A stretch of 63,103 nt of DNA, filler included, from Polymyxa betae A26-41 (lineage: Eukaryota > Protista > Endomyxa: Phytomyxea): the NCBI GenBank assembly GCA_003693705.1. It is 4 parts of 4 records of this genome, joined end to end, with 100 filler letters (N's around TTAATTAATTAA, not from the genome) between each part and the next. Parts side by side here need not be neighbours in the genome. Positions count along the whole stretch, not along the records: positions 57,988 to 63,103 come from RBZT01000507.1; 3 more parts are not named here. One strand, written 5' to 3'. Shown here one piece after another: positions 3,319 to 63,103 of this stretch. The translations under genes and the position numbers were made by a program. Numbering within the stretch: position 1 is the stretch's first letter; the number at the start of each line of letters is the position of its first letter. The notes under the pieces were generated by a model. It was given only the letters and a program-made list of their open reading frames with translations. It searched no databases and had not been told where the DNA came from.

Positions 3319-4464
3319 CTAATCAAGATTAAGGTATTGGCTCAAACTTGGTGGAGGGGTTTCGAAATACATGCTAATCTGATTGCCCTGTGGCTGTAGG
3401 CAGCAATGACAGTTTGTCAATAATGTCCTTAGCAACTGGAATTTGGCGCACTTTCTGACGCTTGTCAAATTGCAAGGACGACCATAAATTTTTCAAACGT
3501 CCAAAACTCCACTCAACGCTCTCACGAACTGAGCTCATGGCAGAGTTAAATGATGCCTCGGGTGATCCAGGCTCAGCCATCATAAATGGACAGCATATGT
3601 AGTCCGAACAGCTATAGGCAGGATCTCCATAGATTAGCTTGCCGTCGAAAATTTCGGAAGGATGACTCCGTAACTTCGGGACAATGCCACTCATCGCTAA
3701 CAGCGTCGAATCATGCCGTCTGCCCTCGATGGGACCGAACATACTGATTATGATGCCATCGGGGTGGTGATACCCTGCCAGTTTAAACAGTGTCGGCGAG
3801 TGTGCCCACTGAAAACTGATCGCTGGAGATTTTCATAAGGTCCTGAATATCGTCTCGCTGAAGGCCGTGCGATATTCTGCTTGGTACCGTCTATGAAAGC
3901 CCAGCAACTGTGGAGTGGAGCGCCCTGCCTGAAAATGGCATTGCAGTACTCATCAATCCTTTGCGTCGCTAAATACTCATTGAAGAATAGGAGATCGCGA
4001 TGCGTTTCGTATGAAATGTTGACGGTAGCATCGATGACTCTTGAACATGCCCAGGGAGACCTACCGAACTCGTTTGCGACAGTAAACAGACGGCTAGGCT
4101 CCGCCAGACGGCGGCATACCAATGCTAAAGATTCTAATGCAGGGACAGCGTCCTGTGCGCTAGTAATAATGACGTTCGGCAACCGCAGAGCGACTGTCAA
4201 CTGCCGAAGTTCTGGAATAGTGAACCTGAACATGTGCCTAGCGGTAACATCGTCTAAATCTTCGTTGAAATAGTTTCTGTAGTTAATCATAGTTGGATTA
4301 CGATGACGTAATCGCAAGTAGCCGTGCTGCAAAATGTAGTTCATGATGTCGAGGAACTCGGATATATCGGAACCGGTAGCAGCGAATATTGAGATAATAA
4401 ATAGGATTGCCTCCTTTTCCGACATCGCGGGCAACATGAAATCGTACGAGGATAGAGGTACCAA
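3319..4464 (-). pseudogene. PIF/Harbinger (DDE_Tnp_4 / HARBI1-like) transposase, frameshifted
   Basis: Motifs WAFIDGT, GRRHDS, IYGDPAY and FNSAMSSVRESVEWSFGRLKNLW are spread over ORFs 3748-4464 and 3374-3742; a tail NQISMYFETPPPSL..YL ends at 3319. Confidence 0.92.
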
Positions 4465-4899
4465 TAGCGAAACTGAAACTCAAAGCCATCCAGTCACCGA
4501 ATTCTCGTTTTATTACCGTGTTTCAGTCATTGTGACGGGGTGAAAACTCAAACTCAAATTTGAAACAAGTCGTTCCGAATTGTCTCTATTATTATTCTTC
4601 TTCTTGTTTTGTTCTACTCAAAAGACTCTTCTCGTCTAGACTTTCTAGCGTTTACGGAAGTCTTCTCAAAACATAATACACAATCTTATATAAGATCATA
4701 TACAAAATCATCATGCTGTACTGCCCAACATAGCACTTTACAGCCTAAACTTTATCTCTCAGATACAGCTGGGTTTATACTATATGGTTGCAGTGCATTT
4801 ACTGAGTAATTCGTTCAAAGATGAAGGGACATACTGCACTGAATTTGGTATCAAACAGTTCCTGTTGTGAAAGAGTATCACAATAAGAGCACATTCTTT

Positions 4900-5604
4900 G
4901 CCAGCCTTGATATCTCCAATTGATGTCGCTAAACATCTTCGTAATTTTTTTGAATCAACCATCGCAATTGAATCGATTCATGACCTCATCCCAAAAATTT
5001 TCACGTTTGAGTAGGTATACTTGAGTCTTATAATCGAATTCATCCAAACTGGCATCAAATTGGTCGAAATTAGTAGCAGAGACCCTATCGCCTTACATAG
5101 GATTCCATGTAAAATCTTCCTCTTGTACAGCCCAAAAGATTACTTTCCAACACAGATCAAGATCGAATCTATAATGAATCGCCATCTTCAACATAGGAAA
5201 ACTCGGCTCCAAATCTCGCTCTGCTTCTCTGCAGAATCTCTCGAAATTTGCACATAAATACCGATCACTTAATCGCAGAACCCGTTCTATCGTGGCTTGG
5301 TCGTACTGGCGCTTTTCATATGGATAGGCCCACGTCAGAATTGACTCGGCGATTGGTCATGGATCACGACCGGGGCAGTATTCCCACCGGTATCCGGTCG
5401 ATTTTCATTCCACACGGATCCGCTCTTGAACATATTCTGGAAGAACTTCGAGGACATTGATAAGATGATTTTATGAACGCGGAATTGTAGGACAGGTTCG
5501 ATATCATCCGGAGCATGAACTTCTATGATCACATCACCATCTTCATACCAATGTGACCTATTCGGTAGTGCTGCGTCAACTGATGTAACACCATCAGCTG
5601 ACAT
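4900..5604 (-). pseudogene. Divergent BTB/POZ-domain gene, disrupted
   Basis: WYEDGDVIIEV...FRVHKIILSMSSKFFQNMF (ORF 5335-5604). Other frames continue with SDRYLC...MAIHYRFDLDLCWKVIFWAV, an intron donor, and LDEFDYKTQVYLL, all aligning with the + strand paralogs. Internal stops present. Confidence 0.75.
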
Positions 5605-57987: not shown

Positions 57988-60014
57988 CTATCACAGACTC
58001 GTTTATTACTACGTAGTGAAGTGCTCTAAGGGGTAGACTGACCAGCGCGCAAAGTCCCAGGTAAGCAAAAAGGACTTGAACCCATCGTCGAAGAAGCGCC
58101 CGCGATCGGAGTCGACTGATGCGGAAAAGGGCAAGAATGTGACCTGTTGTCAATACCATGAGGTCGGACATCCTCGACGTCTTTGTCCGCAGTTGAATAA
58201 AAAATTCAAGAAAGTTTCGGATTATACATTGGTCTGTGCTATGAACTTAAATACTGATCGAACTATTCTAGTTCAGATTGGATCAGGAATGACAGCTCCA
58301 GCAATCTTGTATAGCGGTGCTAATCAGGTTTCTCTTATTCCTAAGCGAGTGCTTAATGAAGTGATCAAGTCTGAACTTGATGACTTGAAACTTTGGATCA
58401 GCCGATTTTGATTAAATTGGGAGACAATATACGCACTGTAGAGGTTTTGAGACTGCGACTTTGGATATCAAGATCCTTACTCACGCTGGACGAGTACAAG
58501 TTTCGGATCGTCGATTCTTAATCTGGGATGTGCCAGGAGATGCAATCATTTATAGGTAGTGACATCTTGAAGTCTTTAGGTATTAACCCTTATAATGCTG
58601 TAAATGACTTGGCATGTGTAAGGCAGAAACAGCAGGATTAAAGAATAGTTTAGAGCCTGTACTTAATAATCAGAGATTGAGGTTATCCAAAACGATATTG
58701 ATAAAGCTATTAAAAGAGCAAGTCATTCTGGTTTAGATAAACACTGAATTTCTAAGTTAAAACATTACTCTAAGTACAGTGATGTATTTAGGCAGATTTT
58801 CCAGGAAACTTACTCCATTTTAAACAAGTCTTAAGCCGTGTGGTGATCTGGTTAGCGCAGCCCACCTACGCTACTTTCTACCGTACGCAATTAATACAGA
58901 CTCATTCTATTTTATTGTCTCCATCTGTGATCGACTGTCTCGTACCTCAGATCGGCACAGCCAAATGCTAAACCATACAAACGCAAACTTAGGAAATATA
59001 GCCAGGAACAAAGTCAATTTTTTTAGAATTTTCGGATGACTTAGTTGCCAATGGTTTGATTTATGAGAATCTCATTTCTGAGTGGGCTTCACCTGTGTTG
59101 GTGATTAAAAAAGGAGGTGGTCACCGGATGTTGATTTACGTGCAGTAAACACCATGTCTGAGAGTACAGTATGACCAATGCCCTTCTTGAGTCCATTGTT
59201 ACTCATTTGGCAGATTCTAAATATTGGTTCAAGTAGATGCTTTTAAGGGTTTTTGGCTTATGCCGTTAGCAGAAGAATGTCAAGAGATGTTCTCTTTTAT
59301 GACAGATAGAGCGGTTTTTACTTCAAGGAGCTTTGAATTCAGCTATTCAATTTCAATCCCAGGATGCATGAAGTATTCAAGGAATTGATATTTAACAAGC
59401 TAATTATTGGATTGATGATTTGCTTGGACATTCTGTGACTATAGAGCAGTGGTTTTTGTCATTTTAGAAAGTTTTTTACAGTTGGCTTCACAGTTCAATA
59501 TTAAATTCCATATTGAAAAGTGTGGGTTCTTTTCCACTGAAGTCAAGCACTGTGGTAGAATATTTTCTATTAGTGGAGTGTCTCTTGAGTCATGACCCAG
59601 CACGAATTAAAGCTTGATAGAGATACCTCAGCCAAAAACAGCAAGTGACTTACAGCAGTTTCTTATGTCAGCTCAATGGATGAGTAGGAGTATCCCAGAT
59701 TTTGCCACTTACAAAATATGGTTCGAGTCCTTTGCATGCGTTGGTTTTTGAGGAAATTAAGGCTGCAATTGCTCATCAATGTGAAACTGTCATATCTAAA
59801 AAGATGGTTTAGTGCGTGTACAGTGTACACTGATGCTAATGAAAGCAATAGTTCTGCAGTAGCTACGCAGATACCGCTATCGGATTTAGATAAACCCGTA
59901 GCGCAACAAAGACATGAGCCGTTGGGATTTTGTGGACATAAATTCTCAGGCGCTCAATTGGATTGGCAAATGTTGAGAAGGAAGGATTCGCAGTAGTTGA
60001 TGCTTTGAATAAGC
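57988..60014 (+). mobile_element. Third Gypsy-type element (gag knuckle, protease, RT, RNase H start), heavily decayed, cut by Crypton-like copy 2
   Basis: CCQYHEVGHPRRLCP, AILYSGA (decayed LDSGA), WASPV, DAFKGFW, WIDDL, HEPLGFCGHKFSGAQLDW and EKEGFAVVDAL. Confidence 0.85.
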
Positions 60015-62384
60015 TTGATTATTTTCAACAATCTGGTCAACGCGAAAAGTATACGGCAAAAATGATAGGTTCCACCACCTTTCCACCACGTTCCACCAGT
60101 TCCACCACCGCAATCCCGAAAGTGCGTGTGGATGCCACGCTGGAGGCTGCGCCCGCGTCTGTGTCTCGTAGGCGCGAAATTGACATGCCGTTCAAAATGG
60201 AATCAATGCGTCGCAAGCGAAGGTCGCGCTACCAGACTTGTGATTACCGAGGCCATGCAGGAGAAAGCCAAAGAAGAAGTCGAAAAATTGCTGCAAATCA
60301 TGCAATTGGTGCATGGAGGGCGGCGCTCGTTGACTGGCAGTCGCGTTTTGAAAGATCTGAGCAAAGCCCAATACTCGTGTCATTTCAAATCGCTTCAAGA
60401 TTTTTTAATTATTATAGGTGATTGGCAATCGTTAATCATGCTATCCGAGGATGCACCAGAAGGATTCTGCCCTTCAATTAGTGCGGATTCCATTTGCTCA
60501 TTCATCAAATTGAAAACAGAACCTGCAGGAGAGCCCATAGCATCACGATCCGGTAACCGCCTTTTAAATTGTTTTACTAACTGTGAGATCCTAGCAAGCT
60601 GCTCCTGGAAAGCTCCTATTAATTTAACCCAGTTCTGCTCCGCAATTGCATGCCTTCACCAGCAGCGCAATCAAACCGGAGCGTATGAAGAACCATGCAG
60701 TAACTGTTGGGATTCTTTCCGACGTGATGAGAAGATAGGTTGCCTTCATCATCGTGGAAAGCCTCGTCTCTTCACGCAAGGTAATGTCTGCCTGTCTTTA
60801 CAGGTTGTGGACTGTGTAAAAAAGGGGCGAGCAGATCGTGAAGGGTACCGCGCTCAAGGAGACTCCCCATTGTCTCCTGATGAGCTGATGAGATTGCGAA
60901 AGCATTTATTGTCAGAAAATACATTAGATGGGTGGCAAGAATATGTGCATATTCTATTTGACATTAAGCTCTTCCTACGAGACGGAGAAGCAGCCGAATT
61001 CGGGATCGGCGAATGCCGATTCATACGAGAATTGACTACTTTTGACATTGAAGGCGTGGCATCTATGGTAGCTGTTCGTGTGAAAGGAAAATCGGACAAA
61101 GAACCAGTCACATTATGCATTTGGAGAGATGACGATATTCCTGAACTCTGCCTTCTACGCCACCTTCTCGCATATGTTCATCTAGGGTTAAAAGTGACTG
61201 GCCGCCATGGACCCTGGGGTACACATTCATTACGAAAAACTGCATACCTACTAGCATCTTGGTGTGGAGCCAGTGATTTGGAACTGATGGCGTCCGCAAG
61301 ACATAAATCTCATGACGTCAGTCTAAGATACAAGAAGGATTCACTTACGTTGCTGGAGATAGCCAAGAACAACGGGTAAATTTTTTGCAAAATGCTTATG
61401 TGAGAGTTGATGGTTGATTCAATTTTCGTAGCAATCAGTTAATGATATCGCAACCAACTTGGCGACCAATATTCGTTGAGCACCTACAACTAGCTGTTTC
61501 GCTAAACATCAACTCGGGATCTGTTGATAAGCCGATTGAAAGGCTGGCTTCTGATTTTGTGAGAGATATGACTCGTAAGAATGTTATCACCCAAAGTCAA
61601 ACAAATAATGCCGTTGCATTGGAAAATGCAATTTTACGTCACGTTGTTTTCAGGGACGATCGCTGCAGAGCTCACAAGTCTGATCTCTCAGATAGTTTGT
61701 CCAGATTTGCGTCAAAAACTGCAGTGTGTGGTTGGGCGAACTATTTCAGCCGCGCATGGTTCGGACATTGTAGAGAACGACACAACAGAGAGTGCCCCGG
61801 CCCCGGCAATTTCTGAGCATCAACCAGAAGTCGTGAACAGTAAGAATAAGGCGAACTATATTTATATCATAATTTATTTAGCACTATGATAAGCAGGATC
61901 GCCCGGAGAAGAGAATGCGCCGTGAAGGAGAGTTCGACGTTCAGGAAAGAGAACTGATCGTGAAATGTACCAACGGAAAAGAAAAGTTGAAACTGATCGA
62001 ATCGGCATACGGTAAAATCATCCGCATTCGTTCTGATGGTGATAACGAGTGCTCGCTTTCTAGTTTACTCACAGACAAATGCCGCCAGTTTTGGATTCGA
62101 TCAGTTCAGCCGATCATGTCTTGTTTTCAAAACCATTGTGGTGCTTCACATGATGAATTTTTGCGAAGGTAAAACATTCAAAATGGAAGGGCTCGCATTG
62201 TAAGACAGACGCTATCGATTCATGTTCATTCTCGCCAGCTGCCAATAATGAATCAACAGATTGATGTCTATCACTTTTAAGAACGATTAATCTACGCGCA
62301 GATTGCGCAGGTCTAAATTTTCACGCATTTTTTCTTTCCACCACGTTCCACCACACTATCACAACAGATAATGAAAAAAATCAA
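60015..62384 (+). mobile_element. Tyrosine-recombinase (Crypton-like) transposon, copy 2, both ends apparently present
   Basis: Contains the YR gene; no RT. Imperfect TIR TTGATTATTTTCA...TGAAAAAAATCAA. The 20-bp direct repeat CTTTCCACCACGTTCCACCA lies at 60079-60098 and 62334-62353. Confidence 0.8.
60185..62264 (+). pseudogene. Multi-exon tyrosine recombinase with a C-terminal Cys/His domain
   Basis: Catalytic set R (LFLRDGE), K (VKGKSD), HxxR (THSLRKT), H (ARH), Y (LRYKK). Probable introns at about 61376-61431 and 61840-61896. Last exon KRMRREG...EKLKLIESAYGK...VQPIMSCFQNHCGASHDEFLRR / HSKWKGSHCKTDAIDSC. Frameshifts near 60220, 61635 and 62172. Confidence 0.85.
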
Positions 62385-63103
62385 TTCAAAGGCACGCGAC
62401 GTCGCGTACGACGTGGCGTTAGGGTTTTAGGGTTTGTTGTGCTTGGCACGAAATTACCCCCTTCTAAATAAGAACTAGAGGGAGATGAAGTGGAAGTGCT
62501 GTTACAGTAGGCGGTGATCACTGTCTGATCGCCGAAATGTGGGTCGCCAGAAACTTGTGCTGGTTTAAGTTGACCAGTTCCGCCATCCTTTTTTAATGCG
62601 ACCAACAACGTCGTAGGAATGGCTGGGTTGAGTTCCGGAGCCTGAAAATAACTAGAGCTGGAAGATAATGGATGAGGAGGGACGCAATCGTCCTGGTCAA
62701 AAAGTGCGGGAGGTTCGTCCGGATGGACATCCCTGACAGCTGAGGGTTTGAACGGAGCCATGAGGCCCGCCACGGAGATTCCGATAGCCTTCTGGAGGTC
62801 GCGCCCGATGACTGCGATGATGCCGGCAGGAGGCTAACCAACGTCGAATTTGAAGTGAAATTGTAGCTCGCCGAAAGTAACAGGAATTATAGCGCAACCT
62901 GGTCTGCATTTCGAGAAATGACTGTAATACAGCACTCTACCGACAAAAAAGATTTACGGCCAACTTTCTTACTGCAGCATAAAACACGGATTCATTCTCA
63001 ACCGAATACGCTCCTCTGCTCATTACCTCTGCCGTCTCTTACCAATTAAATGTCGATATGGGACAAGAGAATCGGAACAATTTGATAGTATTTCACGGTC
63101 ACG

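Follow-up and report, generated by a model that had tools for sequence, protein, structure and literature searches.

The window analysed here is a stretch of 63,103 nucleotides joined from four parts of the genome assembly of Polymyxa betae A26-41 (GCA_003693705.1). Its last part (positions 57,988 to 63,103, from RBZT01000507.1) carries, from left to right, a decayed retrotransposon, a Crypton-type element that codes for a tyrosine recombinase (YR) and contains a short box, TTCCACCA, near both of its ends, and a right flank of different nature (Table 1). An earlier note, made from the sequence alone, had described positions 60015–62384 as a eukaryotic tyrosine-recombinase transposon with core-like inverted ends and arm-like phased direct repeats; the element and its direct repeats are retained below within altered limits, whereas the inverted ends are not. 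The ends were mapped with other copies found in contigs of four read runs (X1, X2, X8 and X9), among the loose ends listed.

Table 1. Features of the locus, with positions counted along the window.
Feature	Positions	Strand	Basis or remark
Decayed multi-copy long terminal repeat (LTR) retrotransposon pol (zinc-knuckle-like gag end, reverse transcriptase, RNase H), many stops	57988..60015	+	Left flank, insertion target
Probable Crypton copy, ~2.35 kb, CryptonS-like, defective	60016..62373	+	Limits from other copies and positional homology with relatives; YR homologues
Left junction, (T)GATTATTT, common to retrotransposon target and Crypton left tip	60016..60024	+	Other copies
Left array, four TTCCACCA boxes at 60070, 60081, 60091, 60100	60070..60107	+	Exact count
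Exon 1, Cre-like core-binding domain with CCCH zinc motif (putative), then tyrosine-recombinase catalytic domain	60183..61375	+	tblastn against L001; conserved catalytic residues
Intron 1, 56 nt, GT..AG	61376..61431	+	Missing from X9 record 28; L001 intron at the same place
Exon 2, first of the conserved helical modules C-terminal to the catalytic domain	61432..61839	+	tblastn against L001; family conservation
Intron 2, ~57 nt, GT..AG	61840..61896	+	Skipped in X9 record 28; L001 without intron here
Exon 3, conserved C-terminal module (LT..AR.F...P...C...H...F...C)	61897..62172	+	Family conservation
Right pair, two TTCCACCA boxes at 62336, 62346, 10 bp apart, orientation as left	62336..62353	+	Exact count
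13-nt spacer ending CAACA, last box to terminal repeat	62354..62366	+	Length (12–14 nt) and A-rich end conserved in relatives
Right terminal repeat position, GATAATG	62367..62373	+	Positional homology; X9 record 28 diverges after 62373
Right flank, itself partly repeated	62374..63103	.	Contig depths and ends

The recombinase is encoded by an open reading frame (ORF) at 60126–61379 together with two further exons, and the description of the element as a eukaryotic transposon of Crypton type is supported by its homologues and by a conserved catalytic set. Seventeen homologues of the recombinase ORF were found, the best of which (P0001) is 67% identical and one of which comes from the diatom Cylindrotheca closterium. 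A profile built from 12 relatives retrieved 2650 cluster representatives (E ≤ 0.001), of which 739 had E ≤ 1e-30; most are 650–800 residues long and span the whole profile. The catalytic residues R276, K309, H395, R398, H421 and Y430 (numbering of P0006, the recombinase of a relative discussed below) are invariant or nearly so in the 12 relatives, and the R..K..HxxR..H..Y motifs are readable in the window ORF despite its breaks. The Pfam search of the recombinase gave sub-threshold matches only, to Phage_integrase (E 0.0012) and NDC10_II, and no match to the GCR1_C domain. Intact relatives are 2.3–3.2 kb long with the recombinase as their single ORF, and contain neither reverse transcriptase nor DDE transposase.

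The nearest Atlas clusters are those of diatoms (Bacillariophyta) and oomycetes (Oomycota), followed by the NDC10/GCR1_C, DUF3435 and DUF3504 groups, the remaining Crypton and Starship lineages. The conserved C-terminal region, the lack of GCR1_C and the short terminal direct repeats fit a placement in the CryptonS group, which is an indirect one, drawn from the nearest clusters and the named relatives (C. closterium, and Plasmodiophora brassicae of the Rhizaria, outside the stramenopiles). CryptonS elements possess a conserved C-terminal region and terminal repeats of 5–6 bp, lack terminal inverted repeats (TIRs), and in the majority of described cases terminate in TATGG (PMC3212892). Like the CryptonS of oomycetes and of the diatom Phaeodactylum, the elements considered here have a single YR ORF with a conserved C-terminal region and without GCR1_C, no TIRs or LTRs, short (5–7 bp) terminal direct repeats and a low copy number. 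They differ in the sequence of their ends, which is GATTATT-like, ATCTTT, TGTGTAT or CGGTA; TATGG, a majority feature of CryptonS that is not strictly defining, was seen in none of the five defined terminal repeats.

At the left end, empty copies of the retrotransposon (X1, X2, X8) match the window through 60024 and then continue in frame, as RNase H sequence would, and a Crypton copy located elsewhere (X8 record 20) begins to match at 60016, preceded by 45 unlike letters. The left junction is therefore placed at 60016–60024. The heptamer GATTATT within it (60017–60023), which is also present at the homologous left-end place of the relative L001, is a candidate for both the crossover core and the left terminal repeat. 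At the right end, other Crypton copies diverge from the window at 62368 (X8 record 22) and 62373 (X9 record 28), so that positions 62374–62384 are flank and the limit of 62384 previously given lies about 11 bp too far out. At the position homologous to GATAATG of the window, the right end of L002, another member of the window lineage, reads GAGTATT.

These limits bear directly on the inverted ends. In the full model of the earlier note, 60015–60035 and 62365–62384 would be true TIRs acting as inverted core sites, accompanied by arm sites in which the C-terminal Cys/His domain binds TTCCACCA. The two strings exist as written, with an alignment score of 12, which is unusual in narrow windows placed on the boundaries only (equalled by 2 of 2000 shuffles); 93 of 500 shuffles reached it in windows of 180 x 300 nt around the ORF, where an unrelated pair of strings also scores equally well. 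Moreover, more than half of the right arm (11 of its 20 bases) belongs to the flank, since other copies diverge before these bases, and the first 10 bases of the left arm (60015–60024) are target, being found in the empty retrotransposon copies as well. Inspection by eye revealed no inverted ends in the four relatives whose limits are set by terminal repeats or differing flanks, and L126, L005, L130 and L002 have none of this kind; around the junctions there are inverted matches of 4–5 nt, too short to judge (CAGAT/ATCTG in the window, CAAT/ATTG in L128). Inverted core sites would also need 10–11-nt spacers that are alike in direct orientation, and the spacers differ. What speaks for this model, besides the score in narrow windows, is the presence of ATCA at +7 to +10 from the boundary in two independent right flanks (those of the window and of X9 record 28), where a preferred target half-site is possible. 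The inverted ends of the window are probably not real, and the model as a whole appears improbable. A related candidate, in which each end is a hybrid attachment site (GAT, 10–11 nt, ATC), was rejected as well, because the spacers are unlike in direct orientation and the empty target has no second half-site.

The accepted Crypton model, in which the element would leave as a circle and each end would carry a short direct repeat but no inverted repeat, agrees with what is found in the four relatives with defined ends, which have terminal direct repeats of 5–7 bp and no TIR. TGTGTAT stands at both ends of L005, and the P0004 element (L130/L131) has CGGTA repeats with two different right flanks. 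The P0006 element was recovered on three Logan contigs. In two of them, L126 and L127, it is integrated with ATCTTT on both sides; the third, L128, comes from another run, and its positions 1–2618 are an exact circular permutation of L126:68–2655 (2588 bp, no mismatches) with a 30-nt head-to-tail overlap, the right end being joined to the left end through one ATCTTT. This junction is the one expected of an excised circle, and such a form is thereby indicated.

The box TTCCACCA occurs exactly six times in the piece, always on the + strand, and the box positions and spacings of the earlier note (11, 10 and 9 bp in the left array, 10 bp in the right pair) were found again. In shuffled sequences the mean was 0.13 boxes (0.12 in a repeat of the test), and six were never reached. 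The perfect direct repeat of 20 nt between the two clusters is likewise present (60079–60098 and 62334–62353), and the arrangement of the boxes in one orientation, roughly one helical turn apart, was not only confirmed but recurs as one layout in seven lineages, including a chromosome of Plasmodiophora brassicae (Table 2).

Table 2. Boxes near the left and right ends of the window element and its relatives.
Element	Left	Right
Window	TTCCACCA x4	x2
L001 (window lineage)	TTCCACCA x5 and one inverted	Contig stops before right end
L002 (window lineage)	Truncated	x2, 10 bp apart
L005	TTCAACCA-like x4	x2
L126	TGCACC(C/A) x5	x2
L130–L132	CTACNNC x5	x2
L133	TGCACT x4, with a pair 76 bp before	
L003 (P0005; L003/L004)	ACGCACC x3	None found
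L134 (Plasmodiophora brassicae chromosome)	(G/T)CAACCA x5	x2, 10 bp apart

The left arrays consist of 3–5 boxes with a spacing of mostly 9–12 bp, and a right pair in the same orientation, its boxes 9–10 bp apart, is present in five of the six lineages for which a right end was available. Within an element all array boxes share one orientation. The last right box lies 12–14 nt from the terminal repeat in six of six cases, this interval mostly ending in an A-rich CAAYAGA-like motif, and where the ends are fixed, in four lineages, the left array begins 38–61 bp inward of the left repeat. On circularisation, the left and right boxes would be separated by 64–86 bp, with the crossover between them. 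The counts exceed expectation also outside the window (5+1 boxes against 0.24 in L001, 5 against 0.44 in L005, 8+1 against 0.61 in L126), and arrays are present in L130, L133 and L134 too. The box itself is lineage-specific, namely TTCCACCA, TTCAACCA, TGCACC(C/A), CTACGCC, TGCACT and GCAACCA, among lineages whose proteins are 26–67% identical. Short tandem-like repeats do arise by slippage; that the boxes would be a functionless, microsatellite-like product of slippage or chance is nevertheless exceedingly improbable, in view of six exact copies in the window against the 0.13 expected and of an equal number, spacing, orientation and end distance in seven lineages with different box sequences. 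On the Cylindrotheca contig L129, which begins only 57 nt before the ORF, no arrays were seen.

No phased subterminal box arrays were found in the Crypton literature searched. Kojima and Jurka mention terminal direct repeats only, so that the arrays set the present elements apart from the CryptonS described there (PMC3212892). The conserved phased subterminal layout, as read from these sequences, is what is new here, the element itself belonging to a known class.

Some particularities of individual arrays may be added. A single inverted box follows the left array in L001:441–448 (TGGTGGAC) and L126:176–182, and the window has a degenerate version only, at about 60131–60139 (GTGTGGATG). In L133:249–375 a TGCACT pair (249, 259) precedes the array of four boxes (335–368) by 76 bp, a gap within the range expected (64–86 bp) when two ends are joined in a circle or a tandem; the boxes of L133 lie within a palindrome (AGTGCACT). 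In L134 an imperfect direct repeat of ~13 nt, GGCAAA(A)TAA(A/G)GCG, occupies the expected terminal-repeat positions (2832–2844 and 5258–5270), the left one only 6 nt before the first box as compared with 38–61 nt in other lineages, and the sequence between its boxes, CCACGTTC, is also that of the right pair in the window. When metagenome contigs were scanned for pairs of TTCCACCA boxes separated by 1–3 nt, 120 loci were returned (two gut-metagenome contigs among them), none with a recombinase or any similarity to the element, and these loci were set aside as chance matches.

The layout of the boxes fits predicted binding sites of a protein encoded by the element, which is proposed as the binder because the box sequence changes with the lineage while the layout remains constant. 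The boxes would then be accessory sites of the arm type, and the protein, once bound, would wrap the DNA of the junction, or of both ends, into a complex of defined form that would help in the choice of the ends and set the direction of recombination. Judging the identity of the element and the explanation of its arrays jointly, we consider it on balance probable that the window contains a defective CryptonS-like tyrosine-recombinase transposon with subterminal boxes as accessory arm-type sites.

Several points weigh against this reading. The arm-site role is one that we infer from the architecture and from the lineage-specific box sequence, and the model of the recombinase C-terminus, searched as a whole region, resembles no DNA-binding fold known so far. 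The left boxes either precede the ORF by a short distance or overlap its beginning, a place at which a promoter role would also be possible. With regard to the circle, the junction suggested as a check by the earlier note was found in a relative that is only 32% identical, and a tandem array would assemble like L128; for the window's own family, no circle junction was seen in the four read runs. As for the ends, GATAATG on the right and GATTATT on the left agree at only 5 of 7 positions, and the right flank of the window is not the continuation of the retrotransposon, so that there is no clean, simple insertion. Furthermore, in a short X9 contig a variant right end is followed by the flank that the window has (62375 onward), and contigs of the flank end at 62415 and 62451; taken together, these contigs may point to a longer right end in some copies.

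Comparison with an active element offers a possible account of the irregular ends. Active Cryptons recombine their terminal motif with a near-identical target, and rearrangements follow (PMC9977147). CryptonF-1_cRei of Chlamydomonas resembles the present elements in having a short terminal motif and a target that is nearly, though sometimes not fully, identical to it (CACCG and CAYCG for motif and target, respectively), and causes inversions and translocations (PMC9977147); it belongs to another group (CryptonF, of the GCR1_C type), for which no subterminal arrays are reported there. By analogy, near-identical targets or a rearrangement could explain the unrelated flanks and the imperfect repeat of the window copy.

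A role of the boxes in transcription is a serious alternative, which we rate as rather unlikely on its own and which could coexist with a role in recombination. On this view, a host factor or a self-regulating protein of the element would bind the left array, which would act as promoter or enhancer of the recombinase gene; only in a circular or tandem form would the array be complete, with the right pair added. In all lineages the left arrays either lie no more than ~250 bp before the ORF or overlap with its start, and in the window the alternative upstream ATG at 60061 would even make the boxes part of the ORF. Circularisation would bring the right pair to a position 64–86 bp upstream of the left array, reminiscent of the promoters found at the junctions of certain bacterial insertion sequences. 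On the other hand, the fixed distance of 12–14 nt ties the right pair to the terminal repeat, that is, to the recombination site and not to the gene, and lineage-specific boxes are more in keeping with a binder encoded by the element than with a conserved host factor. It has also to be considered whether the boxes are iteron-like replication or partition sites that keep an episomal circle. Iterons typically consist of direct repeats with a period of one helical turn, and L128 points to a circular form; yet elements of 2.3–3.2 kb with a single recombinase ORF encode no replication or partition protein, and iterons offer no parallel to a left array set apart from a right pair by the junction, which makes this explanation very improbable.

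If the boxes are accessory sites, the extension of ~240 residues at the C-terminus of the recombinase, conserved in the family, is the obvious candidate for binding them. It comprises two helical modules with a conserved C...H...C pattern and was modelled confidently, with a predicted local distance difference test score (pLDDT) of 86.5; its motif is kept in 89 family members. No solved structure matches the whole region significantly (Foldseek E 2.1 and VIA Z 4.6 at best), and a sequence search against solved structures was blank. The model of the N-terminal 196 residues (pLDDT 97) shows a weak likeness to the N-terminal domain of Cre (probability 0.5–0.7), and no small N-terminal domain of the lambda type was seen in the modelled part, which excludes residues 1–39. 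A C-x2-C...C-x2-H motif in the Cre-like N-terminal domain (P0006 residues 182–200, equivalent to 60697–60753 in the window) is invariant in all family members and is probably a zinc-binding insertion, foreign to ordinary tyrosine recombinases.

The bacterial systems closest in architecture are lambda Int with its arm-type sites and Tn916 Int with its DR2 repeats. Both, like the elements described here, have short direct-repeat sites away from the core, on both sides of the circle junction and in unequal numbers, and a recombinase with a domain in addition to the core-binding and catalytic ones. The likeness concerns the sequence pattern only, with boxes at 38–61 bp from the left repeat and 12–14 bp from the right. 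The arm-binding domain of lambda and Tn916 Int is a small N-terminal beta-sheet domain, whereas the extra region here is C-terminal and helical and has no fold match; moreover, these systems are bacterial while the present host is a eukaryote, and no sites for bending proteins are known here. The analogy is a reasonable hypothesis. Carried to its full extent, it would make the family a eukaryotic counterpart of heterobivalent integrases, in which the C-terminal helical region, as a new DNA-binding domain with sequence specificity, would read the boxes proper to each lineage, bridge them to the core and build on the circle junction an intasome-like complex selecting ends and direction; this we can put forward as a tentative proposal, with less confidence than the accessory sites themselves. 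The DNA transposons Ac/Ds, En/Spm and the P element also have multiple short motifs inside both ends in unequal numbers. These subterminal motifs are bound by the transposase and aid in end recognition. They are associated there with a DDE transposase, TIRs and target-site duplications, in contrast to a tyrosine recombinase and boxes all pointing one way here.

To our knowledge, no class of eukaryotic DNA transposons is less well understood than the Cryptons, whose ends are hard to find and which have been described as devoid of structural features beyond a repeat of 4–6 bp. The layout of 3–5 boxes on the left and two on the right, 12–14 bp before the terminal repeat, could serve as a practical signature for Crypton ends and for non-autonomous copies. 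It points to control of a eukaryotic tyrosine recombinase by accessory sites, a mode of control so far known mainly from the integrases of phages and conjugative transposons. The lineage-specific boxes, if binding holds true, would amount to naturally orthogonal pairs of recombinase and site, and L126/L128 represents an intact element with fully defined ends that is usable for experiments.

The recombinase gene of the window copy carries four defects. A 1-nt insertion at ~60220, a base that other copies do not have, shifts the frame relative to L001. At 61186–61190 an in-frame deletion of 96 nt, where other copies have 101 letters, removes 32 residues between the beta-hairpin lysine and HxxR (a gap of 32 residues in tblastn against L001). 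A further frameshift near 61643–61656 leads from frame 3 to frame 1 as compared with L001, and a stop at 62170–62172 ends exon 3 early, at a place where L001 continues. A homologue search with the 85-residue ORF of the last exon gave no match. An X9 contig (record 28) that is 95–99% identical to the window lacks exactly 61376–61431 and about 61840–61896. As both of these are GT..AG introns, the Crypton family appears to be transcribed and spliced; the alternative is an intron-less DNA copy, the library type of X9 not being on record.

The retrotransposon on the left gives weak Pfam matches in the expected order (RVT_1 at 59221–59385 and RT_RNaseH at 59688–59993, both with E 0.1), and the stretch is represented by many contigs and at very high depth in the read runs. 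At the left terminal repeat of the window the target is nearly palindromic, and palindrome and repeat overlap (AATAAGCTT(G)ATT, 60006–60024); near-palindromic targets of this kind are likewise seen in L126:55–67 (AAGATATCTT) and L005:88–102 (ACAATTGT); they could represent a target site bound by a dimer. The right flank must itself be partly repeated, since contigs of the read runs break between 62373 and 62440 or end at 62415 and 62451, and separate contigs begin at 62422 and 62440. It contains a short GC-rich palindrome at 62396–62407 (GCGACGTCGC core) and a telomere-like TTAGGGTTTTAGGGTTT at 62419–62435. Finally, in L002 the recombinase gene of the decayed Crypton is interrupted by an insertion of ~1 kb (4421–5410) flanked by ~110-bp direct repeats (close to 4427 and 5170), and pol genes of Copia type are located further downstream on that contig.

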